A stretch of DNA of 64,000 nt from Paraphysomonas bandaiensis (GCA_965644295.1 CBFFRP010000454.1:1-64000); one strand, 5' to 3'. Counted from the first letter of the stretch, positions 3,058 through 63,672 are shown. Program-made: numbers and translations. The notes: a model not told the origin generated them from the sequence alone.

Positions 3058-5636
3058 CTAGCGCTGAACATCACTCCAATTTTCGTAATAATATAGAATA
3101 ACACCAACCGGTTGACCTGAACAGTATCAGTTAAATACTAAGCACATATTCGTTATAGAAACGTACCAATCATACAAAAGGTAAGCCAGAAAAAGACATT
3201 TCCTATAATTTGGTTATTGAAAGCTGCATTGACCTTCCGTGTAACAGTGACTAGGGGCGCCTGCATGAGCATTCCCAGGAATGCGTGACAAGATATCCTC
3301 CTGAACGGGATCGATATGATGAGCTCATGAAAAGCGGCAGAGAAGAAAAACGCTGCGTAGACTGCTATCTGCTTAGACGCACCCTGTCTTAAAAGGGGAT
3401 AGTAAAGATGTCTGCACATCCAATGGTGTACAGGGAGATTCCATGTACGCCAGTACTCGTCAATAGTGCGCGCATTCCACCAGTCCTTATAAAACTCTCT
3501 GTCACCAAAACGTGTGATCTCAGCGAGCAGGTTGAGCCAGAGGTGGAAGAAAAGATAAAATCCCAGTAGCCAGACATATGTATTGGGAATCATAATATGG
3601 ACCAGTCTCTGAATCACACTGAGGATATCCAGGTCATGCATTGGCTGCATTGCCGCCTCTAGCGCAGGAGTCATGTGTTGGTTGACAACAAATAAAATCA
3701 TTCCAGAAGTAATGACAATACGCATCAGGAGTGTAAGAAGGTATCGCCAACGAATACATGGGGAACGAGGATAGTTCAACTGATAGCACAGTGTAGGAGC
3801 CACGCAAAAATAGAGCAAATTTGGAATCGTCAAGTTTTGAGGATATGTTACCACGGGACCAGTGATATCCTGCATCTCTGCATGAATATTGACTAAAGGC
3901 TTTGCGTTATTGTCTGCTGCCGAGGGATCGCTCTGTATTCTGTCGGCGGCCTTAGCCTCCCGGTGGGCGATACGAACATCCCTACATAATTACATATTAA
4001 TACTGCAAGCACTATCAGTGTACTGCAAATTCCAACAAAGGAATAAAGACATGACATCAACATCTCACAGCACTTTCATAATGACATACCTATTGCAGTG
4101 GGCGTAGGATATCATTTTCATCCACAATATGACAGACTGCATTAGGTACAGCATGCACAGAGCCGGGTGAGACTTGCTGAACCATACCCACAGGCAAGAC
4201 CCGCAGATGTTTCCAAGAGATAAAAGGAACTGAACCACGAAGGCGGTTCTGTCTGAAAAAAATCCTTTCTGTGCCAATTTCTGAATTCACATATATCAGA
4301 ACGAACGTACCAAGAGGAAGAGGAGGAATAAAACTTACCTCTACACCAAATGTCAGAAGTAGAATCAGACCCCACGTGGCAACCACCAACAGGGGTTGGG
4401 GTAAGGCCCACCCCCCTGTCGCAGCTGGGGTATCTCTGGACGTGAAGTACGACATATAGAGGCCGTACTCTACAATGTTATCAAATATGACCCGGAAGTG
4501 AGAGACGAAGAGAATAATTACGCCAAGATTGAAAAACCCTCGATAATTCTGTTGCTTAGCATTAATGGAGAGAGGAGACGGCTGACTTCGAACATGGATG
4601 GATTTAGAGGCGGAGAACGACTTCCCTGTAGGGCGGGACTTCTTGTCCTTGGTTGCGGGCTTATAAACATTGCTGGTAGGCTTGCGGAGGGAGGATAGAG
4701 TGGGGTCATCTCGGTTTTGGAGATTCTACACATTCGTATAATAATATGATGAGTTACAATGAATAATATATTTCGGAACTATTACAGCAGGGCATATATA
4801 TCATTGGCACTTTATACAGAGAATGACGAAAGCAAATGCACCTGCAACACTCTGTTAGAGGACTGCACCCTAGCCAGGACTGGTGGTGGCATACTAGGGC
4901 TTCCAGGACCATCTATATCATATCCTATGTTAGAATCTGACATACTGGTAGATAAATGATTCGACGGCGCTTTTCCAAATCCCCCTGTCTTCTTCGGATG
5001 TGCCCCACAGGCCTTGTCAAGCATGGTTATCCACTGTTGTGCCTCCGCCTCATTATCTGACGATAGCCTCAGTAACGCACCACTTTGAGGTCCTCTAGAT
5101 ATATCAATTGCACTCTTGAGGCACACACTAAATATGTGATGCTTTCCATTCTTCGTGATGCCCTCATCTAATACAATACAGTCACTCAAGTCAATAGTTT
5201 TACGAGGATGACGATCGTTTTCATCCCCAAAATAACTTAACACTGATCCTTGTAATACAAAATAACGTAATCCCCAATTCGATGCAAACGAGATCATTCG
5301 ATCTCTCCATTTAAACAGATGACCCCTTCTGATAATGCCATTCGTGACATCATTCAATTCCTCACTTAAAGAATGAATCGCATTCTCAAGACGAGCATTC
5401 TGTTTTAGAAGAATATTTATATTATCATCTGCACTGTCTGTTTGGTTCGTAGATGTTGATATATGATGAGAGTCAGGTGTGTGTGTATGTGTAGCTGATA
5501 GACGGTCTAATTCACTGTACAGAGCACAGATCTCATCCGAAGCAGTGTCGCCTAGACGGGTCTGAAGGGTGTTGACCACTTGACGAAGGGATGTGATACT
5601 GCTATCTATTGTGGACGCACTTGTTTCGGAACTCAT
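3058..5636 (-). CDS. DGAT1: Diacylglycerol O-acyltransferase 1 (MBOAT family) with N-terminal PH domain, multi-exon
   Basis: Exon 1 encodes a PH domain (IRRGHLFKW...WGLRYFVLQGSVLSYF...EAQQWITML). It splices in frame to DGAT1 motifs SIHVRSQPSPLS, QNYRGFFNLGVIILLVSHFR, APTLCYQLNYPRS, FGDREFYKDWWNA, WNLPVHHW and FSAAFHE. The last exon ends GQPVGVILYYYENWSDVQR*. Confidence 0.95.
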
Positions 5637-5669
5637 TGCAGTAAACTATGAAAGAATTAATAGAACAAT

Positions 5670-6433
5670 CATACATACATACATACATACATACATACAT
5701 ACATACATACATACATACATACATACATACATACATACATACATACATACATACATACATACATACATACATACATACATACATACATACATACATACAT
5801 ACATACATACATACATACATACATACATACATACATACATACATACATACATACATACATACATACATACATACATACATACATACATACATACATACAT
5901 ACATACATACATACATACATACATACATACATACATACATACATACATACATACATACATACATACATACATACATACATACATACATACATACATACAT
6001 ACATACATACATACATACATACATACATACATACATACATACATACATACATACATACATACATACATACATACATACATACATACATACATACATACAT
6101 ACATACATACATACATACATACATACATACATACATACATACATACATACATACATACATACATACATACATACATACATACATACATACATACATACAT
6201 ACATACATACATACATACATACATACATACATACATACATACATACATACATACATACATACATACATACATACATACATACATACATACAAACATACAT
6301 ACATACATACATACATACATACATACATACATACATACATACATACATACATACATACATACATACATACATACATACATACATACATACATACATACAT
6401 ACAAACATACATGCATACATACATACATACATA
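5670..6433. repeat. (TACA)n microsatellite, ~760 bp, in a divergent promoter
   Basis: Near-perfect array starting ~33 bp upstream of the DGAT1 ATG and ending ~275 bp before the ATG at 6709. Confidence 0.99.
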
Positions 6434-6708
6434 TACAGTGTATTCTGTGTATTTCTTTAGATATAACGGTTTCATAGGGTATGGTTTTTGTGTAGTGGGT
6501 TGTGTATGTATGTGTGTATATGAATGTATATGTATGTATGTGTCTTCATTCAAGTGGATTATGTGCTTATGGAGAGGTTGTTATATATGCTTATCGTGTA
6601 GTTGATAGAGAGGTGGAGCATATATATATATCTGATATCAACTAAAGAGATTCATACATCATCACAGTAGAGCTAAGTTGCTATTCCTACATTGAGTTAC
6701 ACTATACA

Positions 6709-7244: not shown

Positions 7245-8320
7245 GCTATATTTGATGTGTGCCAAGGAGTTTGTAAAGTTATATTGATTCTTCCCAACTA
7301 GTACTATTCACACTTTCAAATGTTGTCATCCGAATAATAATCGTCATAGTTTGTTTTTGATTTGTAATTTACATTCAATGCAATTTCTTTCCAGTCACAA
7401 TATGTGACATTTGGCATTGTACTGCATGAACCACCCAGTCTCTGATCGAGAGAATCGCTCTGTAATGTATACACTCACTGTATCTTTTGAACAATATGTC
7501 AAGTGCTAAAAATAATTATTTTCGCACGATATCTGAAATAGGATACCCGAAACTGACAATTGGGTGGTGACTGATCTTTGAACTTACTCGACAAGACAGC
7601 TTCTAATTGCTAACAATAAAGCAAAACTCAACATAGGAACCATGCATTTTGCAAAACTCAACATTTTGTTTATATACAGTACTAAATCAGTAGTCAATGA
7701 ACAGAACTACCTTTGCAGTTAAAATTGTATTTCATGCAAAATACTTTTATATTTGGAATCTAACATAGAGCATAGAGTAAATATATCCATCATCCATCCA
7801 ATTGGAAAGAAAGGTACTAGAATTTAGAATTAGTAAGTGTTGCGTCATCACTTCGCAAAATTTAGGACTATACGTATTTAATCCTAGGGTGTGTGGGTTA
7901 GGAGCATGATCTGTACTAGCCCGTGCGGTTTATCAGCAGATAAATCAGTTTATTCGAAAGAAGACCACATCAGCCATGAACATCTACTACAAAAAATACG
8001 CATCTAACAACGTATTAGATATATTTATTAAATAAACTTGCATGCAACACTTAGCCGTTGATATCAGGTCATACGTCGATCATTTTAGGGCACACGTGTG
8101 CACATCATTGCAACGCGCCATACACAAAGAATACTGTAACAAAACACAAAGGAATGGCACAATAATAGCACTGCTCGTAGTTTACAAAGTATGTAGTGCA
8201 TATTGCTGTATCTACCAATAATAAAATGAAGTTAGTGTAGCAAGCAAGCTAGCTAGCTAGCAATAATCGGGATATTGTCCTAAGTTTTGGCATGTGGCCA
8301 TTCTCACTAGAGCTTAGTCT

Positions 8321-11500: not shown

Positions 11501-14500
11501 TTATGCTACTCCCAGCTCTGTGACTCCAGTTTCACGAATGGCTAGCAATACTTTCTCTCGCAATGTATCCTTTGAAGTGTACTTGGGCATTATCAGCATA
11601 TGGAAACAGGTGTGTGAAGATGGGAGTGTATTTACTGTCGTAGACCCCATAACCAGAGTAAACGGAGGCGACAAACCACTGAACCCATTGTACGGAAGAG
11701 AAGTGGTGCCAGTAGAAAAGCAAAGCAACCGGCGCCTATCAACATCATCCATTTCCTGCACAACTTCCCAAAACATTTCGACCGTCGGATCATCGTCAGC
11801 AGCATTACGTTTATAATCTGTGTGTGCACGCCATTCGGAAGTGTCGATGGAACTTCTGTTTCCTTCAATCAATAGCTGAAGCGACACATCAGTAAAATGA
11901 TTGAAGCACTCTCTTGGGCAGAAACTTTGAACCCCAAGTACGAAATGTCTAATCAAATTAGTATTATCATCCATGCAGCATAGGTAGTACTTTACGACTG
12001 CTCGTAAAAAATCCACGCGATTGTGAATTGTTACAGATTTTGACCCACCATTAGGAACAAGAGCAAATTGCGAGTGATCTTTTCTCATAACAGTGAAGTC
12101 CAGACATGACGTGTCCAATGTTTCAGCGTCCATCATACATATACTACTCATTGACACCGCTACCTGAGGACTAATTATAGAGAGGTCTGACATTCCCACT
12201 CTGTGCCCAAGGAGAACGCGATATACAGTAATTGGGAAGTTAATAGGTAACGTTCCACCAACAGTTGACTTCACAAGACAAAGTCCTACCAATCTTCCAA
12301 GACCAGCATACATATTCTTGGCGCGTTGACGTAAATCCGCATCCTCTGAGCTACAGACGTCAGGGTCGAAATATATCAAGCCAGTGTCATCATCTTTGCG
12401 TAGGAGCACACTTTCCGGTGAGGCGTTAATCTCAGCTGCAGCTTCAGATAGAACAGATCGAGTGACACCATTTACATCAATTCCCATTTCACCCTCTATG
12501 GAGAATCGGATGTGGGACCTCTTTAGGTCTGAATGACTGTAAGACATCAGCTTCGTGATAACATCGTTCACCAAGTTTGTTTTCTTCGGGAGACTTATAA
12601 CCAACGGTTTGAGATTCGTACAAGCCTGTGAGGTCATACGATCACGAAATACCTCCAGAAGGACTTCGTCGCTAAGTGAGGGAGGGGGGCCCAATCTGAC
12701 AAAATCATTGAACGGCTGAAAGGACGTAGTTTTAATAAGTTGGGTGGTCTGATCTTTCGCGAGTTGAAATCGATCAAATTCCTTTGCACTGTATTCGTCA
12801 AAAATTCCCTCGCTCTCGCCGTCCGATTTTTGCTCATCTGCCTCCAAAAGAGTGGCAGTGGTTTGATTTTTAAGGATTATTTTCTTCAATACCATATCGT
12901 CCAGATCCATCCGTTTTTCCTCCAAGGCTTCCCTCACGCTTCTTTGCACTACCTCAGGTTCATGTCCCCGTACTATCCATTGCCGTACCAATGCATTAAG
13001 ACTAAGTAGTATCTCTGTACCAAGAAATTGTACATCCATGCGGCAGACAGTTACAGGTGTTCCCATCAATTGGCCAATATCTTGTCGAATATACCACAGC
13101 GCGAGAAGAGTGAGTATATTTTCCATTCCAGAATAATTTTCGAGAGCTGTTTTAAGATTCGACGGAATTTTATCCTTATCTCCGATCAGTTTGGACAAGT
13201 CTTTCATGCGATCCCGAAGCACATGATCAAACACAGCGTACGTTTCGCTGTCTATCTGCAAAATACAGGCAACATGTCGGAGCTGATAAATGAACGTGCC
13301 TGAAAGTGCAGTTGTTTCTGCACGAGAGATTCCTTCATTCTGAGTCTGTTGCTCCTCAGCTGCGGCCTCGTCTTCGAGGTACATGACTAAACTTTCTCTA
13401 AGCGATTCGCTAGTTAGTGGGGATAAGTTGTAGAGCAGTGATGTCGCTGCAGCGCTCAGTGAGCCAGCAACAGAGAGAACTTCACTCCCTGCAACAGCAC
13501 TGCTACGGCGGAGATCTTCTATAACTTCCTTGGGAACAAAGCGGAGTGCAAGAGCCTGTGTTGTGTCTGGATCTCCAGCAAGATTCTGTACCATACCAAA
13601 GAGCAACCCCCGCAACCGGTCAAAACTGAGGCTATCCTCCGTACTAGTAAAGTGAATCATATCAGATGGAACATCAAGACGCCGCGAGTATGCCTCACGC
13701 AAACTGTCATATCGACCAGGAGTGCTCAGCTCATCTTGTATTCTGTCACATTGATTGACAACTACGATAAACGGTTTAAGGTTAGACTTTGCTACATTAA
13801 TAATGTCCTTTTCATTATCTAAACTTTCTCCTGCTTTAAGTACCACAACAAACAATGACGATAGCTCAGCAGTACATTGCGTGATCGCTCCACCACTAGA
13901 TTTATCGCTACACATTGTGTGACCGGGAAAATCTACGGCATACACTTGCAGCATATCACGGCTATCACCTTCTAGCCATTCCTCAAATGGTGCGCTAATG
14001 GAGGCAGCATAATCTACCCACGACCCAACAACATGTGCGAGTGGCTCGGTTGTTCGTGTTACAGCATCAGGGTGTGTATCTACACCAAAAAGGCGATGGA
14101 TAACAGTAGACTTTCCTGAATTTTGAGAACCAATAAACCCTATCATGAGATTGTTTTCCAGTATGCGTCGTATGCTGCATATCCTACCAACGTAGCAGAG
14201 TTTCTTTATGATAATGCGTTCCTGTCTCGTATATTTATCAAGTTTTACTGCGGCAGGAAGTGGGTTAGTAGCCTTTGCTGCAGCTCGGATCCTCTTCTCC
14301 ACATCATCCGGGTCTGCAGACTGTAACTTACACCCTCGGTAAATGCTTTCGAAGACCTCCACCACACTCTCCTCCAGAGGTGCAATTTCATCCACAATTT
14401 CCTCGGGATGTTGTCCCATGTTGGATAGAAGAGTCTTAAGCACCACACGGTAATTAGATGATTGGTGATCCTGCATTGCGTAGACGCCGGCAGCTTTGAG

Positions 14501-16398
14501 CGTTTTTCCGATGTTCAATACCACTAAACCTGGAAGGCTGAGGAGCCCGACAGCGCCTAAGTACACACCAGCTCCAACCCCAACTCGCGGCTCCTGCTGT
14601 CGCTCTGCTCTACGCCTATTACTTCGTGCAACAGCTAAGGCAGCAGGAGCAGAAAGGATCACTGACGGTAGAGTCAATAATATACCAGCAGCAGTCAGAA
14701 TAGATCCGCCTACTCTGCTAACTCCACCTGTTATGAAACATTACGCCACTGGCAGGGATCGTACTTACACCGCTCACCTAATGCCGTGCGGGCACCGAAA
14801 CGGAATACATTCTCCTCAGTATGAAGTTCTGTGACTGCTTCTGCGATCATTTCTATTCTCTCTTGGCAACGGTTGCGCAGTAAATGTACATCACACTGTC
14901 TAGCGACGTGTTGCCGCATGCAGGGCTCCAGCACAGTTTCAGCACCGAGTAACCGCTCTACACTCAAGAGGAGCTGCCACAAGTCATTCATACCAGGGTA
15001 CCTTGTTCGAAGAGCTTCTATATTTCCACACTCACGGCTACAAACAGCCACACGCATCAATGCACCAGTGATAAACTCACCATTCATGGTGGGATGCAGT
15101 GCGCGTACCAGTGGGCCGTCAGCAGGTTTAGATGTGCACGGTGTAGCAGAGAGAGTGTTACTATCTCCGAAATCTGACCGTACTCCTATTGTTATACGAC
15201 CCGGAATACGAATTCCTGAAATATCGACTGTGGCTCTCCGGTCGGAACAAGTAACGAGTAAGATTCGGGCAGTTGAATCCACTTCTATATCCCCATGTGA
15301 TACAAAAAATGGCATTCCTTCATCTCCAATTTTCACCGGGACTTCTTTTGTCATTCCACGCAGTAGTACGGCATCTAAGTTTTTTCCTATGAAGTTGAAA
15401 GTTGTGCGAAACGGATGATTTACAATGCGCACGGATGTAATTATTGGTGATAGTTGAAGGCCGTGTTTCTCCTCACTCTTCTTACATCCTTGTCCCAATT
15501 CCTTGTTATCCAACATTTTGAAGCCAATCTGGAGCTGGGTCAGCTGCTGCAGTGCGTTACAGATTTGTTGTCCACTGCGCAATTCTGAAACACTTCCGTC
15601 AGTGTTGGTTAACTTGTATATTCCAATGGGAAGTATCCCCGCACAGGCAATATCTGAATGATTCGAGAGTTCCAGCTCGATTGCTTCAATGCGAGCGAAG
15701 TCTATGGATATATCTTTTCCATCAGAAGAGTGGATTTCAGGTATACGCTTTACTTCGCGTATGAGAGATTCATGAACGCTACTCCATGACGGAAACTCAT
15801 TTCGACTTAAAAAACTAAACTGTTGGAAGTCCAATAGAAGGCGATCCTCAAATCCTCTGCAAACAGTGATATGTCTATCTTCCAAGTTTTTTTCAGCTAA
15901 TTGATTATGGACCATTGGTGACGCACAGAGCGGTCCCGATATTGAAATGCACGTGACTGGAATATCATCGCCCCACTCTTGTCGCAGCAATAGTCCTGTA
16001 ATGTGTGCCACTGCACCAGACCAACCCTGGCCAACTACTAGAATACGATTGACATCTCGTCTGCGCATCACTCGTTTAACAATTCCCACAGGAAGCAGTC
16101 GAGCTAATAGGAAGAATTGGCCACATACCATACCAGTATCAGGGATCACCACAGGCGCCTGTACGCCCCATGCCATCTCAGAGAGTCCACTGTGATCCAA
16201 GGCAATCCCGAGGGTCCTTCCAATGACTGTGAGAGAGTATGTATAGTCTGCATGAGGGGAGGAACAAACAAATAGATTTATATCTGATAATCCTTTAAAA
16301 CAACTCTTTGTGGCCTCATTACGGTGATCGGGATTAACTGAAAGGACCTCAAGCAATCTCTCTGCTAGGGTGATATCGTTAATCTCTTCTCTTGTCAT
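11501..16398 (-). CDS. ~1615-aa fusion: degenerate class-3 lipase-like domain + Ig/IPT-like segment + hydrophobic hairpin + P-loop GTPase + C-terminal HECT E3 ubiquitin ligase
   Basis: A single 50-nt intron (14728-14777, GTGAG...CAG) joins the 582- and 1058-aa ORFs in frame. Motifs: ILVVGQGWSGAVA (lipase elbow-like); GSQNSGKST, DFPG, NQCD (G1/G3/G4); GEMGIDVNGVTR, FWEVV, LLCFSTG and LPSSHTCFHMLIMPKY (HECT with catalytic Cys). Confidence 0.88.
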
Positions 16399-17288
16399 GG
16401 ATACAGTGATATGGTTATATACGCATATTAATAGTACTAATAATGAGAAGTAGACATACACATATAGAAATCTATTCACATATTCAATACCATCACTTCG
16501 ATTTCTTATGTATGAAAATCCTCGTTAACATCTCACTTCATTTGCATACCAAGATATCACTTCATTCCCACAGAACACACGTCACTTCTTCAACCACACA
16601 CTTCTCTTTTGGAGGTCTAAAATCCACTATTTTTTATAAAATATGTTTTAAAATCTAGAGTTTTTTGTTGTGTTACAGAGAAAAATAGAAATATAAGAGA
16701 AACTCGTAAAGTATAGAAATATCCGCAGGACTGGAGAGCGACGTCTGGTATACGATAGCATAAGGAAGAGTTATGGTAAGATATTAAGGAAAGCCTACGA
16801 AATCGAGACTATGATAACTAAGATGTTGAGCTGGTAGATGCATTGTATATGTGTACTGCCTGCCATATGACAGCTACAACCTACAACTGTCCTGCATGTA
16901 CAGCTATAGTTGACAACGTACTCGTAGAGTATAGCACAGCGGTAAAGAAGTACATGGTATACAGCAGTACTATATACAGTACGTGTATGATAGACATGTA
17001 CATAGCACGTACCTGCGTGTATATACAGGTGAGTACATATGTACAGCAGTACTGTATATGCTGTCTCGATGTGTACATATACTATACGGCACAGCAATCT
17101 GTACATAGAGCGGTACATAAGAGACTGCACATAGCATCGTATCCCCCACAGAATCAGAGATAGAGCTAGATCTCTCCATCTACCACCATAACAATGACTG
17201 TTACCTATCATCACAATATCTTAGTGACCTATCTGCTGCTGTAGACACCTCTGAGCATCTGTATATATCTGTATATCTGTATATAGAC

Positions 17289-51232: not shown

Positions 51233-52501
51233 ATGACCACCTCTCTTTCTTCCACTCAACACACACTATTTGTTTTCCTTGGATTACCCTCCTGGGCACT
51301 CGTTGATGTCACCTGGTCCCTCTTATCACAGTTAGCCTCTCATCTACCAGAGAGCTATGCCATATCAGTATTTCTTGTACTTGCTCTCACTATAGGGAAC
51401 ACAATACCCCTCTTGTCGAATACATTTCTTAAAGCTGCATCACAAAATCAAGTTCGTGCTGTTATTTACGGAATCTTATCAACTGGATTTACGTGTGGTG
51501 TTCTCATATCATTATTTTGGCATCAAACTATTCCTATTGGATCGCACCGTTACTCTCTTATCTTTTACGCACTATTCTTTATTGCTGGTGCTTGTTCGTC
51601 TACTTCCAATGTTACACACTATATGTATGTTGCCAAGTATTCCAGCACAGAGACGACTGCGCTCTCTACCGGCATGGCATTAGGCTCTATGACTGCTGGG
51701 ATTCTGGGTATATCGCAAGGACTTTTTCTTTGTAGCGTAGGAATGTCTATTACCCACGTGTATATAACAGTTGCGCTTTTGTATCTGCCAGCCATATTTT
51801 CACTGAATTTAATGCACGCGCCGACTGATAATGGCTTAGAATCTCCGGACAGCCCACTTCTCTCTGACCACGTGGGCCTGTCCCATGCTAGTCCGACTCA
51901 TGGAGACGACAAGCTTATAATGGATAGCGCTTGTACTGTAGTACGCCGAGGTATAATTGCGTCTGTTGATAGTCAATCACAACGGAGTGAGAGTATATGG
52001 GGCCATCACTCCACTCTGCTATATGTCCAAGCTGGGAATTCTTTCCTTGGATATGGGGTGGTTCCGTCCCTTATCTCCCCAGTGTGTTCACGGTTTTCGT
52101 CCCCGTATACGGTCCTCTTATTGGCAACTGGTCTGCTTTGCGCCTTGGATCCGGCCTGTCGAGCTCTTACAGCACTTCGCCCCCTCCGTACTCAACGACA
52201 GGTATTTTACGCCTCAGCGATACTTGCCAGTTTGGCCATGTGTCTGATAATTACTCTCGCTTTTCCTTCGTCGGCTCCACCCCTCTCATCCCCCTATGGA
52301 GGGGCTCTTCCAGTGCTTCTATATGTGTCGTTTGGTGTTGGATTCGGTTTCACTAATACCTCCGTCTTTATCCTTCTGAAATCTCTAGTCCCTCCTGACG
52401 AGGTGCAGGATGCCTACAGATGGACAGGAATTGTGTCTCAGACAGGAGCAATGATGGGGTCTTTTCTTAGTTTCATTCTTGTCATTAGTGGATGTATATA
52501 G
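51233..52501 (+). CDS. SLC52/RFVT-like riboflavin transporter, intronless
   Basis: The N-terminus FLGLPSWALVDVTWSLLSQLASHLPESYAISVFLVLALTIGN resembles the SLC52 signature (GxxSW...W..LP......LPE.W.L......GN). SNVT motif, many TM helices, ending Q.G...GS. Confidence 0.75.
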   Translation: MTTSLSSTQHTLFVFLGLPSWALVDVTWSLLSQLASHLPESYAISVFLVLALTIGNTIPLLSNTFLKAASQNQVRAVIYGILSTGFTCGVLISLFWHQTIPIGSHRYSLIFYALFFIAGACSSTSNVTHYMYVAKYSSTETTALSTGMALGSMTAGILGISQGLFLCSVGMSITHVYITVALLYLPAIFSLNLMHAPTDNGLESPDSPLLSDHVGLSHASPTHGDDKLIMDSACTVVRRGIIASVDSQSQRSESIWGHHSTLLYVQAGNSFLGYGVVPSLISPVCSRFSSPYTVLLLATGLLCALDPACRALTALRPLRTQRQVFYASAILASLAMCLIITLAFPSSAPPLSSPYGGALPVLLYVSFGVGFGFTNTSVFILLKSLVPPDEVQDAYRWTGIVSQTGAMMGSFLSFILVISGCI

Positions 52502-53986
52502 GTTTTAGCTTGCTTTTTTGTTTTCATAGAGTTATTCTTCGAGTTTGTATTTACTGCACATATTCGTGTGCCAACAGTCATTTGATGATTGCTGCATATA
52601 TGTTATTTTCGAATCTTACTTTAGCCGAATAGTTTGTTTCAACTTTTAACAACCAGCTTACTATTATTAGCATTACCCTTCTTGTTGGACGGTGATCAAT
52701 GAATACAGAGCACCATATGATGCAATACACAATGCACATGATAAAGAAGACCGGATTTATTTTATTTTAGGAGCAGATGAAAATTACAATAGCGATTGCG
52801 ACTGTTAAAATGCACTTTGCAGCATGAAATATGCTAACGAAAGCCAAATATATAAAATATAAATATATTGTGAAGTCCTAGACTTAACAATGTTACTAAG
52901 GTCAACAATTTAGCAGGTTTAGTCAATGTCAAAGCAATACTTGAGTACTTGACGTGTTGAGTATTGAAGGTACTATAAATTAGGGCCTGCTAACCGTTAG
53001 TAGCCATATAATGGGTGCTCAGTTCCCCACAACTATAATGACATTATCATTAACGGCCCATTAATAGTTGACCTGAACGAGAGACTGACAGAAGTAGAAG
53101 AAACAACATAGAAATGTAATAATTGGGGTAGCATTTCAAGCATGTCTGGTGTATGTGCTTGCTCGGTACTTTTTCATTGAGTTTGTTAGTACTGCTTTAG
53201 CATGAAGATAGCTATACTGACAATGAATTACCTGTATAGCTTCTAATTCATATTGTATGCTCAACTTACCGACGTGGGCTGGAAGATCATAATGCCCACG
53301 ATTGCATCCATGTAAATTATATGTAAATCATTAGTTTGGTACCCTGCTATGCAGCACAGCTAAGTGTATGACCTACTCGTAGCATCGCTCTAATAAACGT
53401 CGTCGATATTTAATCGCCTTCAACAGTTACCCACTTCTATGACATACATACTGTATCAAGATGCATTCCACTCACAGCTTGGCGATTGTCAACATTCGAG
53501 GCTATTACATCCCATTTGTCTCATTTGGGTGCATAAATAGCTTGTATGAGAATAGCCTGTATGAGGTTATTCGTTGTTTGGAGGGGGCTGTGGATGATGT
53601 CACTGGCGTCCATATCAGCATCAATAATGTTTCTACACATAACGGCATTGAATCCAATCATGTATGTGTAAATGAATACTATTGGCTATTAAAGGATTAA
53701 TTATACAGTCTGTATACAGCAGTAGTGGAGTCTTCACTTTTCCAGTCCACGCCCTCTCCGGAATGTACGTACACTCCATGGTCGGTTCTTGTGGTTGTGC
53801 GGCACTTCTATATATCGTCAATCACCCCTCTATATACACCGCATATACATACCTCCATCTATATATATATATGTATACACTCGGCAGTCAATCATCTCCA
53901 TACATAAGACTGTATTGAATTCATTCATCATTCAACCACATACTTGAACAACTTATAAATTGTATTTGAAAGTCATTAATAAGAAC

Positions 53987-55480
53987 ATGAGTGACGTAGA
54001 TAGAGATGATGAGAGGGGTCAGGGAGAGAAGAAGAAAGATGCTTCAGAGGATCGTCATAAGAGTCATAATCTGAAACAAACACATCTAGCTGTACAAGAT
54101 TTGGCAACATTAGATCCTACAAGATTAACAGCATTGACACCTGAAATTATATCTCGTCAAGCCACTATTAATATAGGGACTATTGGACATGTGGCTCATG
54201 GAAAATCCACTGTTGTGAAAGCCATATCTGGCGTGCAGACAGTTCGATTCAAGAATGAATTGATTCGAAATATTACAATTAAATTAGGTTATGCGAATGC
54301 AAAGATATATCGCTCTGATGCACCATCAGATGAATATGGATTGTATAGATCGAAGGGAAGCTCAACCGCTGATGTTTTTACCGAAGATGGTAAGACATGG
54401 AGTGTTCAGCGACATGTTTCATTCGTAGATTGCCCCGGGCACGATATATTAATGGCTACCATGCTTAACGGTGCTGCTGTTATGGACGCCGCGCTTTTGT
54501 TAATAGCCGGAAATGAGACTTGCCCCCAACCTCAGACATCTGAGCACTTAGCTGCCGTGGAAATCATGAAATTGCCGCACATTATTATTCTTCAAAATAA
54601 GGTAGATCTGGTAAAACAAGAGCAGGCAGAGGCTCAGCATGAACAGATCAAGAAGTTTGTTGCGGGAACTGTTGCTGGTAATGCGCCGGTGATACCAATC
54701 TCGGCTGTGTTGCGTTACAACATCGACATGGTGTGTGAGTACATTGCTCGATACATACCTGTACCTTCCAGAAACTTTATTGGTTTGCCCCGGTTGATTG
54801 TCATTCGATCTTTTGATGTGAATAAACCCGGAGAGGATGTCCAGTCTCTTAAGGGAGGTGTAGCGGGTGGCTCTATCCTTCAGGGCATTCTTAGAGTTGG
54901 AGACGAGATTGAGGTTCGTCCTGGAATCGTCGCCAAAGATACCGACGGCAACATGAAATGCACTCCTATCTACAGTCGCATTATGTCTCTTTATGCTGAA
55001 CAAAATGACCTCCAGTATGCTGTTCCCGGTGGTCTTATTGGCGTGGGAACCAAGATTGACCCAACACTTACCCGTGCTGATCGACTCGTTGGACAGGTAC
55101 TCGGCCTTCGTGACCACCTCCCTGATGTGTTCACCGAGGTTGAGATTTCATTCTACCTCCTTCGTCGCCTTTTGGGTGTCAAAACTACCGAGGGAACGAA
55201 GCAAGCTAAGGTTCAGAAACTCAGTAAGGGCGAAGTTCTTATGGTTAACATTGGATCAACTGCCACTGGCGGAAAGGTCGTTAAAGTTCTCGAGGGACCG
55301 AGTGGCGAACCTGTTGCACGTATTGTCCTTACCCAGCCCGTGTGTACTCAGGAGGGGGAGAAGATAGCTCTCAGTCGACGTGTTGACAAGCACTGGAGAC
55401 TCATTGGGTGGGGTGAGATCAGAAAGGGAGTTAAAATTGAAATGGGTGAGGCTGTTAGAATAACCCCCGAAGAAGGATAA
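53987..55480 (+). CDS. EIF2S3: Eukaryotic translation initiation factor 2 subunit gamma, intronless
   Basis: [67 protein letters not shown]. Confidence 0.98.
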
Positions 55481-56926
55481 GCATCATAGGAGATGGTTCG
55501 TAACTCACTTGGTTCCTGAAATACACAGGCAAGATATGAGCAGTTCTTGGGTTTTTGAATGATATTCAATTTAGTTCCAGTCTGTAGTCGGTATTACCTG
55601 TCACCTCGTTAAAGAGTTTTGTTATAATAACAGAGACTTTATTCATTTGAATTTCTAGCTATGGTACACACGGGTATATCCGATTCATTTATTGTTAGTG
55701 CTGCTGCCCACACGAATACTAGAGCTAATAGTAATGCCACAGTATGATATTATTAAAAAATATTTCAAAATGAACCTACGCACTAAGCACTATTGTAGCT
55801 CTCCTATTACACCGTACATGATAAAGTACACATGTCGTCCCACTATGCAGTGTAGCAATTATTAAGTGGCAAGAGGATTGATGATGACATTTTGATTTAG
55901 TCAGTCTAGCGTTATTAATACTTCATTTTGAACACACAGCACTACGTAAAATGTAAAATATATTCGACACTTTCCATCACAATTTTAGTGTATATCTACC
56001 TATCAGAAGTTGAAATAATATTAATTAATGAATATCAACATTATTTAGGAAAATCTTGCATGATTTACAAAAAACGTTTTGTGTAAATGTACATGAGGTA
56101 CATACATATAAGCTCCAAACTGCACAATAGTATATACGAGAATTTTTATGATTTCTACATCACAAAATGGGATCATATAATACTTTATATGTATGGTGGA
56201 AAGTGAAAAGCGAGCGGCTCATCGCGACAGACATCCAGCCATATGTATAGAGGAAGCGTGAACACTCAAAGCAGATGTATACAGTGTGCTGATATAGATG
56301 GGAGTTATAGAAGGGTCATGAGATGAATATATTCAATAGAAACACTGTGATATCTTTATATATCTACCTATAATTCTATCCGATCATATCAGAGTGCTGT
56401 GCACTCACTTTAGTTGTCTATCTATCGAGATGATAGTCTCAAAGAAATCAATCATCACCCATATCGCTTGGATAGTGAATATCTTCCAGGAAGTTTCATA
56501 TAGTCATATGATCAGCCATTCTGACGAGATTAGGGATATAGTGCTGCCACTGTACCAGATACTGTGTGCTGTTGTAGATGTACTCGTAGAATATACATAC
56601 CCTCAAGTAGACGAGTACTACTGTAGTGCTATACCGTATACACATAAAGCAATACAGATGGTATGGAGCGACCATAGCATGTATCGGTATATACAGCACA
56701 GTATATAGCAAAATACAGCATTCAAACCAAAAAAAAAAAAAACTCAAAGAGACGTTTCAGTTTCACTTGACTTCGACTTCATTTGAGAGTATGTGAATTT
56801 CTCTCTCCACATACATATACATACAGGCTCATGTAATGTATGGAGAGTGCTGTTAACACACATGTCCTCAATGGATATATATATTACTATACTTAGTTAG
56901 AGTCACTGTATTAACCCTCAGTGATA

Positions 56927-59900
56927 ATGACTGATGCCGCTGTGGGATCGATTAGCCATATCCTACAGACGGCTTTCAAGGAAGATTATGAAGAAAGGAA
57001 TAAAATTAATGAATCCAAAGCACGTAAACTCGCAATAGAAGAGCGTAGAAAAGAAAGAGAACGTAAACGTCAATTAGCTGAAGAACGAAAGAAAGAGGAG
57101 GAAGAAAGACTTGCTGCAGAAGCAACAGCATCAAAGAAAGGTGCAAAGAAACCGGAGACATCTGCAGAGCCCTCTCAAGATGAGGATGATGAGCCTGAGG
57201 AGGAAGAGTTAGATGAGGGGGAGCTATATGAGAACCCTGTAGATAAGATACCACTGAGTGAACATCACCGATCCTTACTCGAGGGTAGAGTAGAACGGAT
57301 TCAAAGTGAAATAGAAGAGAATAGCAAAGATGCGGAGCGTCTAGTGACTTATCTCAAACAGCAGCGTGAGATTGCCAAACAATTGGAAATCGAGGAAGAA
57401 GAAAACTTAAAGAAACAGGGAATCATGATAGGACAGCATATACCATCGTTAGTTTCTCAATTAGATGTTGATCCGAATGTCGTGAACGGTTTCGGGAAGA
57501 TAGGTGCAAATTTAGTGATATCTCGAGAGCTGCTAGGTCAGAATAAAGAAAGAAATCTTAGAAGAACTGGCAACCTACCAATCTCTGATGAGGCAGAATT
57601 GCGTAAGACACAACGGAAACAGTATAAGGATACTGAAGTCGAGGATGTGCCCCACTACCTGCAGCATACAGGTGCCTTCAAAGAACGCAGTAATATTACG
57701 GCCGCGAGGTTTTCTTCCACTCTGCAGGAACACAAAACCCACAGAGAGACTATAGCATTAGAACACACCGCTAAAGGAGTAGACATAAAAAAAATTCCGA
57801 AGCGTGACTGGGGACAAAGTGCGATTGAACGTGATCAGGATCAAGCCGTTTTGAAGTCTATTAACCACCGGCTGAATTATCTCAGGAATCCAAGGAACAA
57901 CCCTTCAGCTGTGACGAAGACTCTGGTTGCGCCCTCTATAGGGACCCACAGACCGGGAGGAAGTGTCAAGAGTGGAAGATCTCAACACAGCTCTGGTGTA
58001 TCGGTCGATTCTTCTGTGCCACCGCCTCCACCTGCTCCGCGTTCAACGAACAAATCGGTCATTCAATCTGGTCGATCCGGACATAAAACCAAGCGCGGGA
58101 TAGGATCCAGCACTACTGCCGTCGCAGGCAATGCTCTTTTTGTCACAGAGCCAAGCTGTGTGCTATTTGACTCTTATGATGTAGGAGAGAAGTATGTTCA
58201 GAGTGTCGCATTCCGTAACATATCTTCTGTCTGTCGTACGCTTAGAGTGATTCCTCCCAGGACTGTTAGCTTCAGTATGTCGCCTTTGCGGTTTCCTGCA
58301 AATAGCAAAGGTGGCGTAGTAGCTCCTGGTATGTGTGTTACCTCGGATGTGACTTTTTACCCTAAGTCTCTAGCGGATTACACGGATAGTATTCATGTGG
58401 AAACAGAGGGTGGAGATTACAGCGTGCAGCTACTGGGGCGTAGAGACCCGCCAGTACTTAATCTTCCCTCTCTTCTTGATGTAGGCGCTTGCCTTGTTGG
58501 TGACGCCCTTAGAATATCCGTTCCTTGTGGAAACTCAGGTGGAGCAGGAAAATTCAAGGTTCTTCGTAGTGATTGGTACCCAGAAATTCCTGATGATGTG
58601 GACTATACGGGCTGTGTGCGGAGTGCCCCTTTCACCGTCTACCCTATCGAATTTTCCCTGGAACGGCGCGATTCGATCGACCTCACAATTGAGTTTGTAC
58701 CTTTAGATATCGGTCAATTTCAGCGGAACTTTGTGTTTTTGGGTGACAATGAGCAGTACATTACTGTAACCCTTCAGGGCGAGGGGAGACAAGTTGAGTG
58801 TGCCGTAACTGAGATCAACTCCATAACTGTCCCAGCCATTGACCCGACTATTTTGAAAGACTTACACTTTGCGAACTGTCCAATTGGTTCAGATCATGAG
58901 CAGGAAATTACTGTTTCTAATACAAGTGGTTTACCTATTGAGTATGAGTGGGTGTGGGTAGAATCACGCACGAAAGACATTAGAATGGCTTCACTAGGCA
59001 AACTCATGATAAAGGAGGAACAGCTAGAGGATGATAGAGAACGAAGAGAGCGGTTAAAAGCAGAGGCGGCCGCGGCAGATGCTAGGCGCCTCAGTATTGA
59101 TAGCAAGCGTTCAGGTCAGCGCACAGGTAATAAAACGGCTGGTGGACAAAGTCTGTATAATAGAGGTGATACAGATATGATGAAGTCTACGGGTTTATCT
59201 GTGGAGCACGGCTTCGAGGAGTCCGCTGTTATGAAAGGCTTCGGTATTATGCCTCGGCGAGGAGTACTCCCAGCATATGGATCTTCCCCTTTTGTTGTGA
59301 AGTACACGGCATCTAACGTGGGCTTGGATTCGGCACGTGCTGTTCTTGTTCTTCGTGATGTCACGGAGTCTAGCATGCCAGGGAAGTCCCAAAGCACCTC
59401 AATTGTACATCTTTTGGATATGGCACACGGACCCTACCACCGCTTACAAAGCTGGCTAGATGAGATTGGGGTAGAAGTTCCTTCCGCTAGTTTAAAACAT
59501 GAGCATGACGATCTATTCATGCGCGGTTTGCGGCCACATAATGTCCCTTCCAACAGAATAAGCATGGACACATTAATGTCGATAGCTAGGAATCACGCTT
59601 CAGTGGAGGGATTGCAGTCATCGCTATCAAAGTTTAGATTTACTGTTGGTCGCTTGTTAAGTAAAGCGCGTCGTTGGATTCACAGGACCACTGAAACAGA
59701 TGTGCCGGATGATGATTCTGTGATTGGTGCGGACTTGATGGAGCAAGAAGAGCCAGACAACGAAAGTGTTGTACTGGACGATGCATTTGCGATGGCCACT
59801 ATTCAGCACTGGGATGCAAATGACGACTCACTGGCAGCTACATTCCCAATGTTTAAAGTAGAAATCCCCAGAGATTTTGAGTCTCACATGGTTAGTAGCC

Positions 59901-62900
59901 GAAAGTATATCAATCCTGATTCGGACGAGGCAAAATCTATCAGCAAGGTGTTGTGGATCAATAATATTAGTGCATTCAGCGTTCTTGGATCAGGGTTATG
60001 CACTCTATTAAACGAAAAGGTAAAGCATGAGGCTGTTGATTTCATTCAGAGATGCTCCCGAATTAATCTACCAGCGCTCAATATGAATGTGACTGGTGTC
60101 GGAGTTTTGCCTACTTTTCACTTAACCCCACCAAAACTTATTGTGGGTGGAGCAGTCAGTGTTGGAAAGGAATGGACGGGTACTGTTACACTGCATAACA
60201 CCAGTCATATTTTGAACGAAGTTTCGATTGATACATCAGCAGCTGTAATCCCTCGAATCGGGAACAAGGAGAATGCAACTATCACGGTCTCCAACTCGCA
60301 CATCATTCTCCTTCCTGGAAGTACTGAAACAATCAATGTAACAGTTGTAGTGAACGAAGTAGGCGACTTTGACATCACACTCCCCGTTATCCCTAAGAGT
60401 GAATTTCTAGAAGTGAATGACATAATCATTTCGATCCATACTGTGGGTCCGAAAATACGATTTGAGGCGCCAGAAGTTAATATCGGTCTTGTTAGTACAG
60501 GCGTAGAGACACAGTCTGTGGTGTCTTTCACCAATGATACAGACATCCCCTTGATTTACAATTTATCGTGCTCTGTTGATGCATTGCTCAGTGCATTAAG
60601 TACAAACCGTCGCAATGAAAGGCGTGAGTCAAAATTTGCAACGCCTCCACGAATTCCATCGACACCCAACGAAGATGTACAGTCGGTAGCACATTCTGCG
60701 AGATCGACGAGGTCTCAATTGACTGAGGCATCGACTGATAGTTATGCAATTGAAAATCCAACAGCAGTATTTTCATTTATGCCTCCTAGTGGGGAATTAG
60801 GGCCAGGAGAGACTTGCCATACGACTCTACGTTGTGTGGCTGGTAAATTTCCCCAACGTGTGCGGGGTGTCATCGAGTGCAAGGTCACTGATATTAATGG
60901 CGTGTGTAACCTTCCGTCGCAATACATCAGCGTGAGAGGAGAAGTTCAATCACCGTTGACGATATTAACTCCTTCGCTAGTGGATGTTGGAAATGCTTAC
61001 ATCAATACTCCTATAAAATTCGAAATAACTCTTAAGAATTTGACGAGTCTAGGTAGTAAATTTAAATTTGAGCGACCCGGTGGTGACTCAGCTTCCTACA
61101 AGTTGCAGTTTTCAGAGAAAAGTGGCGATCTTCAAGGCCAGGAGAAGCGAGTTATTACTGTCACATTCACTGCCCTTGTGTCTGGCGTCACAGATGATGT
61201 CATTGGGTGCAAAATATTCGGTTCACCGAACCCTATCGGGTTTCAGTTAAAAGGAATCGCGAAGGGTATTCACGTTGATTTCGTGCCTCTTGAAGAAGGT
61301 GAGGAACCGCCGTTACCACTTGCAGACCCAACAGAGCCTCAGTACCCTGGGCCGGGTTCTGTTCCTGACCCAGCGCCTCTTCGACCGCTTGAATTCGGGT
61401 CTGAAGTGGAACTGTACGAAAGGAGGATCAGGCAGTTCGCTATTCGGAACTTATCAGCTGTGAGCGCTTTTTTTGATATCCGCCCGAGGAAGTATGAAGT
61501 CGGTGAAGTGTTTAATGATGATGACAGTCTGACATCCTCGTTAGCTGAGCCGCCTGCAGTAGGAAAAGGACTTCTTGTGCCGAACGAAGATGGTGAGGCA
61601 AGATATCAGTCCGAGGCGGGAAAGAAGTACATTGGAGCTATGATGAAGCGTCGTCAGGATAAGCACTACTTGACCCTTGGCCTGGGTGCGTCATATGCTG
61701 TAGAACCAAAGACCGGAGTCGTTCCGCCATGGGGAGTTGTAGTGGTTACTGTCTTGAGTCGTAACGACATGCCTGGGTGTTTTGATGATGAACTGGTGTG
61801 CGACTTCAGAGACCATAGAAAAATGTTTCTGCCGATGAAAATGAATGTTTTGGGATGTCCGCTTGTTATCGAAAGGGACTCGTATGGAATGTCATCCTTC
61901 ACACCCCCTGAAGGTCGTACTGAGGAATCGAGTGGTCTATTATTACAAATGGGCTATTCTGCGGTTAATTCTGAACCAATTGTACGAGATTTCAGGGTTC
62001 GAAACAACGGATCATCTCCGGCTACGATCAAGTGGAAGTTACGATCTGTGTCGTCAAGAGTTAATGGCCCATTGAAAGTCGAACTGAGACTGCAGAAGAC
62101 AGGAGTAAAAACCCATTTGCTCTTCTGGGATGATGTTGCCAAGGATTCGCCGTTCGATGTGGACCCAAAAGTTACGGTAATTCCAGCGTATGGACGAAGA
62201 AATTTTAAAGTTAAACTTTTGAGAACGAATGTAGTAGGGAATGAACTAGCCTTGTTGTCAGGTGCTATCTCGTTCGACTCAAGTCCGTCAGATATGTCTG
62301 TGCCTCCAACCAGAGAGAGTATATCTGGAGGAGGAAGTAGACCTGGAGAAGCGGCCGCACCAGAGAGCAAGCAGTCGATGGTGGAGTCGTCGTCCGCAGC
62401 TAGCGTTGTATCGCAGGCGGCTAAATCGGCGGTTGCACGGGTTAGTTATAATATCTCTCTTCATCTCAAGGGCAGTCTAATGCAGCCAGAGATTAGACTA
62501 GATAAAAATATATTGGTTACCACGAAGGATCGAGTGACTCATGTTCCATCTAGCCTTGGGATCGTTCTTAAAACAGATGCACCTAGTCTATTTGCAAAAG
62601 GTGCACGTCCATCAGATGTCTGCAAGCGTGTTATTGCACTCATGAATCCAATTCCGGCCACTCTGGCTTTCAGTGTTTCCGTGGAAGGTCCATTTACCGT
62701 AAAGCTTTTATCCGATGAAAACAAGCAGCGTCCGAAATCACCGTCCTCCGTACATACTTCGAATACGTTGTCCTCTAGGCTTTCGAAGGGACAAAGCAGT
62801 ACTGCTGGTGGTTCATCTGTTGGTGGAACTTGCCTACTTCTCTCTCAGGCTTCTGTGCGGTTTGTTGTAGCTTTTACACCAAGGAGGGAGCTCCGCAATA

Positions 62901-63672
62901 CTCTGCAGAACAATAAATCTACCCTTGGTCTGGGGGATAAGGCTGCCGATGGTGAAAAGGGTACACTTATAGTATCATTCTCGACTGGACAGCAGCTTCA
63001 TGTGCCGATTACTGTCACGCTCTCTACGCCGTTTATATCTGCGTCTTCTCCCAGACTTCATTTTGGTGTATGTCACACTACTCGCCACTGTGATGGTATA
63101 CTTCTTCTATCGTCGTCCACTGATGTTATCGCGAGATGGAGTGTGGAGCACGTTCCAGGGGCTGGGGGCAGTCGAAAAGTTTCTTCTATCCGAGTGAAAG
63201 GATTTGAATCGCTCGGACAACAAGAGGATGACCCATCTGTCTTCACCATTACTCCTGGGTCTGGAGAGCTACAGGGGCCCACAGTATCGCCAACTGCTGC
63301 CACATACTGTCCTCCTAAAGATGTCAATAGAAGGTATACTGAAAAATATGCCACTCTTGTGTGTTATAATTTTGTGTTTTTAGTCAAAGCATCGCTGTTA
63401 TCGAGCAAAGACCTATGGCAACGTCATGGGCCACCTCCACTCTGACGCTACAGGACTCTCTTGTGGAAAGACACCAATCATCAAAGAAGAATGCTATTGA
63501 TGCTCGTTATCCCATTCCGATAAATATCAAGTTCAAGCCGAGTCGAAATGTGCGATACAGTTCTAGATTCAGATTTACTTGTGAGTATGGGAACACTTTT
63601 GATGTGTTGTTGGAAGGGGAGGGAACTTTTGAGGAGCACGAACACAGACCATTGAATCCGGTCCCGAGATGA
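56927..63672 (+). CDS. DLEC1: DLEC1/CFAP81-like ciliary central-apparatus protein with multiple Ig-like ASH domains
   Basis: LNYLRNPR motif followed by EPSCVLFDSYDVGEKY...FRNISSVCRTLRVIPP...GVVAPGM..F.P.SLADYTD. Repeated ASH-like modules and C-terminal YSSRFRFTCEYG. An intron at ~63334-63383 joins the last exon. Confidence 0.85.

Follow-up and report, generated by a model that had tools for sequence, protein, structure and literature searches.

The stretch of Paraphysomonas bandaiensis DNA analysed here (GCA_965644295.1, CBFFRP010000454.1:1-64000; 64,000 nucleotides (nt), hereafter the window) carries on its minus strand, between positions 11501 and 16398, a gene whose 1615-residue product ends in a HECT ubiquitin-ligase domain. 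Ahead of this domain lie, in order from the N-terminus, a lipase-like fold, a beta-sandwich, a helical bundle, two hydrophobic helices, a G domain and a helical region. As a HECT ligase, the protein stands out by an accessory architecture that is novel and conserved, and the family to which it belongs is unnamed and uncharacterised. The features of the gene, with amino acid (aa) positions and the basis of each assignment (AF2, AlphaFold2 model; pLDDT, predicted local distance difference test; HMM, hidden Markov model), are as follows.

11501..16398, minus strand: coding region of the 1615-aa protein; two exons and one intron, stop codon at 11501-11503, end-to-end match to the transcriptome protein P0001
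14728..14777, minus strand: 50-nt GT-AG intron of phase 1, between codon 540 (Leu) and the split codon of Gly541
15499..16398, minus strand: class-3 lipase-like (EDS1-like) alpha/beta-hydrolase domain, aa 1-300 (AF2, Foldseek, VIA-align, family profile)
16015..16032, minus strand: degenerate nucleophile elbow GQGWSG, aa 123-128 (HMM alignment, AF2 elbow, family columns)
15124..15456, minus strand: beta-sandwich, aa 315-425 (AF2 strands 319-418, pLDDT ~90 or more)
14779..15096, minus strand: helical bundle with the motif LHPTMN, aa 435-540 (AF2 helices 436-559)
14501..14713, minus strand: hydrophobic Gly/Ala/Pro-rich helices, aa 546-575 and 590-615, with a short polar loop (hydropathy, conservation, AF2)
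13574..14158, minus strand: TRAFAC-class G domain, aa 731-925 (Pfam MMR_HSR1, VIA-align, motif alignment)
12599..13573, minus strand: helical middle region, aa 926-1250 (AF2, all-helical, moderate to low confidence)
11504..12598, minus strand: HECT ubiquitin-ligase domain, aa 1251-1615, with the codon of Cys1581 at 11606-11608 (Pfam, phmmer)

Gene structure and transcripts

Two open reading frames (ORFs) lie head to tail on the minus strand, at 16479-14731 (first ATG at 16398) and 14677-11501, and the initial annotation had proposed that a 50-nt intron fuses them into a polypeptide of about 1615 residues. The borders of this intron read ...gca tta g/GTGAGC...AACAG/gt gga gtt...; its removal leaves exon coding parts at 16398-14778 and 14727-11501 and rejoins the frame as ...ARTALG/GVSRVGGSILTAAG... 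(in wider context, ...FGARTALG/GVSRVGGSILTAAGILLTLPSV...). Precisely the same junction is found in P0001, a 1615-aa protein from transcriptome MMETSP1103 (taxid 36769, the genus Paraphysomonas, Chrysophyceae) that is 99% identical to the window protein, and comparison of the genome with P0001 discloses no interruption of the coding sequence besides the 50-nt intron. Public sequencing runs across 14728-14777 give the same picture: in run X1 a single contig of 5564 nt spans 12500-16500 and lacks precisely this intron (plus-strand ends CT..AC, which are GT..AG on the minus strand), and a 16,094-nt contig from run X18, collinear with the genome, retains the 50 nt. The length of the X1 contig fits one mRNA made up of the 4848-nt coding sequence and untranslated regions. 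The product is a single 1615-aa chain from one expressed gene and one mRNA, as had been proposed.

The intron recurs at the same codon and in the same phase (K/R-T-L-G, with the next G after the junction) in two further loci of the family, L005 (~7726-7795) and L006 (~7700-7762), and the three members that share it are only ~25-30% identical to each other. It is absent at that position in other members, e.g., P0016, which lies on a 55-kb genomic contig. In a separate set of runs (X8-X17), all marine metatranscriptomes from at least five studies and one of them from a hydrothermal vent, 5-15% of the sampled words of 12500-16500 were recovered; this word content is a hint that natural plankton expresses the gene itself or one very close to it.

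The HECT domain

The assignment of the C-terminal domain is, on sequence, beyond doubt. Pfam HECT (PF00632) is matched with an E-value of 2.2e-63 over profile positions 8-300 of 306, and a phmmer search against solved structures returns Itch (3.1e-34), Rsp5 and NEDD4L over ~350 residues, with E-values of 1e-31 to 3e-34. The domain is a complete, bilobed, NEDD4-like HECT at the extreme C-terminus of the chain. In particular, the motif HTCF, which had been taken as the sign of an intact domain, occupies residues 1579-1582, and Cys1581, within LPSSHTCFHML, aligns with the catalytic cysteine of Itch in LPRSHTCFNRL. This residue lies 34 positions from the C-terminus and is kept in all six relatives whose HECT domain is present. 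By domain and catalytic cysteine, the protein is a HECT E3, for which ligase activity is predicted. Elsewhere in the same genome, 38 exon-level HECT matches were found at ~22 loci, several of them within very long open frames (4171-5998 aa), and in this organism HECT appears to behave as a promiscuous module.

The N-terminal lipase-like domain

The N-terminal part of the protein is much harder to recognise. The N-terminal ORF and its sub-fragments have no Pfam match at E-values up to 10, and phmmer with residues 1-560 retrieved no solved structure; a family profile was required. With the aligned relatives, the picture changes: 15 of 25 match Pfam Lipase_3 (PF01764) weakly (best E 1.7e-5), and the only solved proteins found by the family profile, at E-values of 2.9e-7 to 3e-3, are PAD4 of rice and Arabidopsis (2.9e-7), EDS1 (2.5e-5) and SAG101. 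An AF2 model built on the family alignment (pLDDT 84.5; predicted template modelling score (pTM) 0.73) divides this region into three parts, namely an alpha/beta domain (~36-300), a beta-sandwich (315-425) and a helical bundle (435-559), with a pLDDT mostly above 85 in the first of them. Foldseek matched the model to EDS1 (3e-6) and Rhizomucor lipase (1.4e-5), and an exhaustive VIA-align comparison ranked EDS1 first (Z 20.7 and 19.8), followed by PAD4 (17.4) and by fungal lipases and feruloyl esterase (17.2-15.5). On the predicted model and the profile matches of the relatives, residues 1-300 adopt the class-3 lipase fold, and the closest known shape is the lipase-like domain of the EDS1 type. 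The analogy with EDS1, PAD4 and SAG101 that the initial annotation had drawn is thus strengthened: these are the sole solved chains matched by the profile, and EDS1 outranks the best lipase in structure (Z 20.7 versus 17.2).

The catalytic apparatus of a lipase is, according to the alignment and the predicted model, missing. The HMM alignment sets FTGHSLGGA of PAD4 against the family pattern [FV]TGxG[WL]SGx, which places the nucleophile serine opposite Gly125; in the AF2 model a strand (118-124), residue 125 and a helix (126-142) form the canonical elbow geometry. Position 125 is G, D, L or N in nine full-length relatives, which lack the G-x-S-x-G motif, and G, D, L, N, S or F across the family. 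The catalytic aspartate, found in PAD4 within H-D-V-V-P-R, corresponds to a two-residue gap in the window protein and to a variable column in the family. Moreover, the 25-sequence alignment contains no conserved histidine downstream of residue 186, where the lipase histidine is expected, so that both Asp and His of the triad are wanting. Two of the shorter relatives, from Logan contigs, P0021 (GESYSG) and P0022 (GNSFSG), have a serine at the canonical position in addition to the family serine two residues on; the canonical acid is missing from them all the same. The canonical triad thus appears to be lacking from the family as a whole and not only from the window protein, which, judged by its nucleophile and its acid and histidine positions, is not a lipase.

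All 25 sequences have Ser127, Gly128 and His132 just beyond the elbow, and the vestigial active-site region is therefore under strong constraint. The constrained old active site is read as a preserved binding or structural site. Of the initial description, the lipase-3-like fold and the loss of the serine at the elbow stand; the statement that the elbow has no serine holds for the canonical position and fails beyond it, where Ser127 is invariant. An alternative triad, S152-H176-D185, was considered and rejected: S152, F153, G155, P156 and L157 form the structural motif of Lipase_3 ('TFGsP'), and H176 is located in the AF2 model at the N-terminal end of a strand, on the far side from the active-site edge. 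A homodimer prediction for residues 1-300 scored 0.00 and carries no weight either way.

Searches of the ESM Atlas gave two further leads. One, to Lipase_3 clusters of giant viruses, is no sign of a viral origin, as a search of viral contigs found no relative. The other is a streptophyte Lipase_3 cluster (~1019 aa) that aligns in structure with model residues 1-552 over 360 positions, at a query-based TM of 0.48. As this alignment extends past the lipase fold, the three-domain N-terminal module may have plant counterparts.

Beta-sandwich, helical bundle and hydrophobic helices

The second domain was initially described as an Ig/IPT-like segment. As a description of fold this is upheld by the modelled beta-sandwich; anything closer is not, since the best VIA-align matches are generic Ig-like and E-set domains (among them the E-set domains of amylase and galactose oxidase and the IPT domain of Sec5) at Z 5-7, the range that the tool itself states to be noise. 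The beta-sandwich has no Pfam match, and ESM Atlas features for residues 312-540 gave no usable match. The helical bundle, which leads into the hydrophobic helices, is likewise matched by generic helical structures only (Z at most 6.4); within it, L434, H435, M438 and N439 are invariant.

The two hydrophobic helices of the initial annotation recur in the long relatives. Stretches 546-575 and 590-615 are uncharged, with a Kyte-Doolittle 19-residue mean of ~2.0 or more at ~555-566 and 598-606, and equivalent hydropathy peaks are found in seven of seven long relatives. P561, P568, G601 and P606 are invariant, and in an AF2 model of residues 540-1320 the segment forms two long antiparallel helices, i.e., a predicted membrane hairpin. 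The N-terminus of the 1615-aa protein has no signal peptide.

The G domain and the helical middle region

The initial annotation described a GTPase with G1, G3 and an atypical G4, and such a domain is indeed recognised by Pfam MMR_HSR1 (E 3e-7; 31 bits against a cut-off of 21.9 bits). The motifs are G1 GSQNSGKS (740-747), switch-I RT (765-766), G3 DFPG (806-809), G4 NQCD (865-868) and a G5-like TS(T/A). In the profile alignment, DCPG and NKCD of EF-Tu stand opposite G3 and G4. The form of G4 across the family is N-[QHR]-x-D; Asn and Asp are kept, and only the missing Lys makes it atypical. G1 to G4 are invariant in eight of nine long members. These are the motifs of a TRAFAC GTPase, and the domain is placed in that class by sequence motifs and predicted structure.

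The named family is ambiguous. In VIA-align, EngB/YsxC (Z 16.3; root-mean-square deviation (rmsd) 2.5 Å over 158 residues), Era (15.3) and IIGP1 (15.2), followed by IF2 and EF-Tu, are effectively tied. Foldseek with the GTPase and the helical region ranks immunity-related GTPases (IRG; GM4951, IIGP1, Irgb6/10) first, at 3e-6 and an rmsd of ~19-20 Å, and then a bacterial dynamin-like protein, mitofusin-1 and Fzo1, with superpositions at an rmsd of 20-46 Å. The comparison with IRG proteins extends over only ~170-200 residues (IIGP1, Z 15.2), and the window protein does not match Pfam IIGP (PF05049). Pfam Dynamin_N is matched at the P-loop only (33 residues; 26.8 bits against a cut-off of 27 bits), the hairpin lies N-terminal to the G domain, and the rmsd values are very high, so that the features of dynamin, mitofusin or atlastin are not found. 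The protein is not assignable to IRG, dynamin or mitofusin. With residues 641-1250, the ESM Atlas offered nothing beyond generic bacterial GTPase clusters, none scoring above 0.79, which falls short of the trusted level. The all-helical middle region that follows the G domain is assigned to no family and is the least conserved part of the protein (mean identity to P0001 22%).

Family and conservation

An exhaustive HMMER search with the N-terminal module, run against 1.84 billion cluster representatives, brought up 33 relatives; for 22 the E-value was 1e-30 or lower. A word-prefiltered homologue search was too insensitive for this family: the full-length alignment retrieved P0001 and P0002 only, residues 558-1277 P0001 only, and the N-terminal ORF by itself nothing, as full-length kin lie outside its length window. 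Members are only 25-39% identical. In five of them (P0004, P0006, P0010, P0015 and P0016), one ORF of 1669-1841 aa encodes the N-terminal module, MMR_HSR1 and HECT. In the closest relative, P0002 (1835 aa; a JGI metagenome), the N-terminal module and HECT likewise share one ORF, but there is no GTPase match in Pfam. P0056 from Dinobryon divergens (1560 aa, HECT truncated) is 31% identical to P0001 over 1491 residues, and a fragment of the family comes from Chromulina nebulosa. The contigs of P0005, P0014, P0021 and P0053 bear a HECT-bearing ORF directly downstream of the family ORF, and the gene calls behind the relatives of ~650 aa are truncated. Wherever a relative can be examined at full length or in genomic context, its modules follow in the same order. 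Since this architecture is conserved and the intron stands at the same codon and phase in relatives' loci, the gene appears from sequence comparison to be old and to have been inherited as a unit.

Mean identity to P0001 is 46% in the G domain, 46% in HECT and 37% in the hairpin, as compared with 35% in the helical bundle and 27% in the lipase-like domain. The G domain and HECT are best conserved, and this gradient fits the G domain, HECT and hairpin as a functional core. Residues 1-900 match only themselves in the 62.6-Mb assembly. The gene is thus single-copy, and paralogues with swapped effectors, for which the initial annotation had suggested a search, do not occur in the window genome. 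An 11,357-nt contig of another organism (that of P0053; Logan SRR30952561) carries two family members head to head, with a 1425-aa ORF with a GTPase match and a 307-aa HECT ORF on the minus strand and a series of 657-aa, 270-aa and 828-aa HECT ORFs on the plus strand. Divergently arranged paralogues thus exist in some organisms, in contrast to the single copy of the window genome. Searches of viral contigs yielded no relative.

Genomic neighbourhood

The following ORFs lie in the neighbourhood of the fusion gene.

4812-5636, minus strand: PH-domain protein
51233-52501, plus strand: SLC52/MFS-type transporter
53960-55480, plus strand: eIF2-gamma
56921-63445, plus strand: 2174-aa ciliary Ig-repeat protein (CFAP65/DLEC1/Hydin-like)

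These neighbours are ordinary nuclear genes, and within the 64-kb window there is no sign of a functional cluster around the fusion gene. The window also contains two microsatellites of 99% purity, (ATAC)n at 1-472 (~118 copies) and (CATA)n at 5670-6433 (~191 copies); the latter explains the overlapping six-frame ORFs at 5593-6553.

Comparison with known systems

In its first domain the protein is most like EDS1 and its relatives, which act in the immunity of seed plants. EDS1 (4nfu_A) superimposes on residues 1-300 with Z 20.7 over 251 residues at an rmsd of 3.5 Å, and PAD4 with Z 17.4; the motifs FTG-x-x-[WL]-x-G, FG/SG-P-L-x-G, x-R-L and P-[IF]-G-x-Y are common to both groups. In the EDS1 family the class-3 lipase fold is used non-catalytically, and the same is presumed for the window protein. 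However, EDS1 and PAD4 keep S-D-H, whereas the window protein has lost the nucleophile serine. The all-helical C-terminal EP domain of the EDS1 family is also missing: alignments end at about residue 300-322, and none of 25 members has a Pfam match to EP at E-values up to 1. In its place, the lipase-like fold is followed by the beta-sandwich and the helical bundle and is fused to the hairpin, the GTPase and HECT, in a stramenopile and not in a plant. The protein is therefore not a member of the EDS1 family, although its first domain most resembles theirs.

The HECT domain has the bilobed C-terminal fold and LPxSHTCF motif of NEDD4-family ligases (Itch, Rsp5, NEDD4L, Smurf). In contrast, the C2 and WW domains of that family are missing and the accessory modules are wholly different; position -4 from the C-terminus is occupied by Leu instead of the usual Phe. 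The G domain has G3 DxPG followed by Thr/His, as in IRG, dynamin and EF-Tu, and flanking helices as in IRG, but no Pfam match to IIGP or specific to EngB, and its N-[QHR]-x-D G4 is without Lys, which sets it apart from Era, EngB and IRG proteins. To our knowledge, none of the Era/EngB-type or IRG GTPases is fused to an E3.

Two systems are similar in concept. RNF213 combines an NTPase switch and a ubiquitin ligase in one chain and acts on membranes and lipid droplets; its modules are an AAA+ ATPase and a RING/RZ-finger, instead of a G domain and HECT. AUP1 combines a lipid-enzyme-like domain, a hydrophobic hairpin and a role in ubiquitination on the cytosolic face of membranes; this is an analogy only, as its folds differ (acyltransferase-like, CUE, G2BR) and as it recruits an E2 and is not itself an E3. 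The suspicion that the combination is novel is supported as far as it has been checked. In the source databases the names of the relatives are uninformative ('hypothetical protein' and one 'EngB'), full-text literature searches found no description of a lipase-GTPase-HECT architecture, and a eukaryote-wide survey of HECT proteins lists neither a lipase-HECT nor a GTPase-HECT architecture (PMC3673628).

A working model and its alternatives

The reading that we tentatively prefer, short of calling it probable as a whole, is that of a membrane-anchored HECT ligase in which the G domain has a gating role and the pseudo-lipase is a non-catalytic binding module. HECT domains need E2~ubiquitin and G domains need GTP, both of which are cytosolic; as there is also no signal peptide, the hairpin would most likely reside in an endomembrane, with both large halves and every domain on the cytosolic side. 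Where a G domain combines DxPG-[TH] with flanking helices, it is often a switch that dimerises in a nucleotide-dependent manner, and HECT ligases are commonly kept inactive by intramolecular contacts. The G domain may likewise be a nucleotide-dependent switch, possibly acting via dimerisation as in GTPases of the IRG and dynamin types, and its nucleotide state would control the access or orientation of HECT, positioning or releasing it. HECT would then ubiquitinate proteins on the surface of the membrane in which the ligase sits. The lipase-like domains of EDS1 and SAG101 are known to function without catalysis; similarly, the pseudo-lipase, together with the beta-sandwich and the bundle, may bind a partner protein, a lipid or a small molecule and would not hydrolyse lipids. 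The architecture is solid and the function is inferred; this applies equally to the GTP-gated ubiquitination by a lipid or nucleotide sensor, and to the role in defence, that had been suggested by analogy in the initial annotation.

Several observations weigh against parts of this model. Insertion of the two helices into a membrane is predicted from hydropathy only, and the loop between them is strongly basic in the window protein (six Arg), which is a poor fit to a lumenal loop; the arrangement may instead be monotopic or peripheral. The AF2 model of residues 540-1320, on which the G domain and its surroundings were compared, is of moderate confidence only (pLDDT 71, pTM 0.47). The invariance of Ser127, Gly128 and His132 leaves room for unconventional chemistry as well as for tight ligand binding. 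Finally, P0002 is a pseudo-GTPase variant: aligned to residues 737-870 of P0001, its P-loop reads TFLSTNNGKKS, the switch-I Thr is missing, G3 is DYPS and there is no NxxD. As P0002 keeps the pseudo-lipase, the hairpin and an intact HECT, gating by GTP cannot be obligatory family-wide.

Of the other explanations, the one that survives best, though we rate it well below the gated ligase, is a factor of membrane dynamics or quality control, in which a hairpin-anchored large GTPase tethers or remodels membranes of the endoplasmic reticulum (ER), mitochondria or lipid droplets in the manner of mitofusin, atlastin or bacterial dynamin-like proteins, and HECT turns over the protein itself or its neighbours (cf. 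AUP1, RNF213). The presence of bacterial dynamin-like protein, mitofusin-1 and Fzo1 among the top Foldseek matches would suit such a factor, as would the Pfam Dynamin_N match at the P-loop segment; however, the latter spans 33 residues and falls under the Pfam cut-off, and the dynamin-like superpositions have an rmsd of 20-46 Å. The invariant prolines of the hydrophobic hairpin, and a fold derived from a lipid enzyme next to a membrane anchor, are also in keeping with it, but the hairpin precedes the G domain, unlike that of mitofusin or atlastin, and no heptad-repeat or stalk homology emerged. Moreover, a single-copy conserved gene is what would be expected of a housekeeping role, whereas the family is seemingly limited to a few protist lineages, unlike core organelle machinery.

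An effector of cell-autonomous defence is unlikely, and would in any case be a special case of the gated ligase. In such an effector, the pseudo-lipase would sense a signal of a pathogen or prey, for instance a lipid or a nucleotide second messenger; the GTPase, acting as an IRG-like protein, would oligomerise on a target membrane (phagosome or viral factory), and HECT would tag this membrane with ubiquitin. EDS1, PAD4 and SAG101 are the sole solved profile matches and the top structural matches of the first domain, but the protein lacks the EP domain, the part of EDS1 heterodimers to which immune nucleotides bind. Similarly, the first rank of IRG proteins in Foldseek is offset by the tie of EngB, Era, IF2 and IRG in VIA-align and by the lack of a Pfam IIGP match. 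Paraphysomonas is a phagotroph, as is generally known, yet the family also occurs in the mixotroph Dinobryon and so is not limited to pure phagotrophs. The head-to-head paralogues on one relative's contig and the low identity among members (25-39%) would suit such an effector; against this, the gene is single-copy in the window genome and has no swapped-effector paralogues there, the search of viral contigs gave no relative, and nothing ties the gene to infection or prey. With a single-copy gene and an ambiguous G-domain family, an immune role is possible but unsupported.

It is more doubtful still that the N-terminal domain is an enzyme that couples lipid hydrolysis to ubiquitination through a non-canonical nucleophile (Ser127 with His132 or another residue). 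None of the 25 sequences departs from S127, G128 and H132, whereas the canonical position 125 varies, and P0021 and P0022 have a serine at the canonical position; however, the apex of the strand-turn-helix in the AF2 model is residue 125 and not 127, the acid position is gapped or variable (and the acid is missing in P0021 and P0022, too), no conserved histidine occupies the site of the lipase histidine, and the lipase-like domains of EDS1 and SAG101 are established to work without catalysis. Almost no credence is left for a pair of proteins, one an orphan of 555 aa and the other a GTPase-HECT of 1058 aa, with the intron a coincidence, a view that prokaryote-style ORF calling and the many database relatives entered as ~650-aa proteins would suggest and that is refuted by P0001 and the spliced X1 contig, which both span the junction, and further opposed by the GTPase-HECT ORF directly downstream in the contigs of short relatives, with a GT-AG intron at the same codon, and by the single ORFs of 1669-1841 aa in relatives without the intron.

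Implications

HECT ligases are defined by the modules in front of HECT. Here these modules are the fossil of a lipid enzyme, a membrane anchor and a GTP switch, a combination that is not described in the literature searched. If the G domain truly gates the ligase, the protein would be a compact natural case of nucleotide-controlled ubiquitination at a membrane. That EDS1 is the closest structural relative of the first domain also bears on the origin of the lipase-like signalling domain of the EDS1 type. At its most speculative, and in our estimate improbably, the family might be a chrysophyte-centred group of single-chain surveillance ligases in which a sensor of the EDS1 type and a dimerising, immune-type GTPase directly control a membrane HECT. 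Were this true, the non-catalytic lipase module used in the style of EDS1 would not be an invention of seed plants, and a GTPase and a HECT E3 would for the first time be known as fixed parts of one polypeptide. The hosts are heterotrophic and mixotrophic flagellates that have received little study and that graze in the plankton in abundance, and even a housekeeping role, such as in the turnover of phagosomes, the ER or lipid droplets, would be new biology for these organisms.

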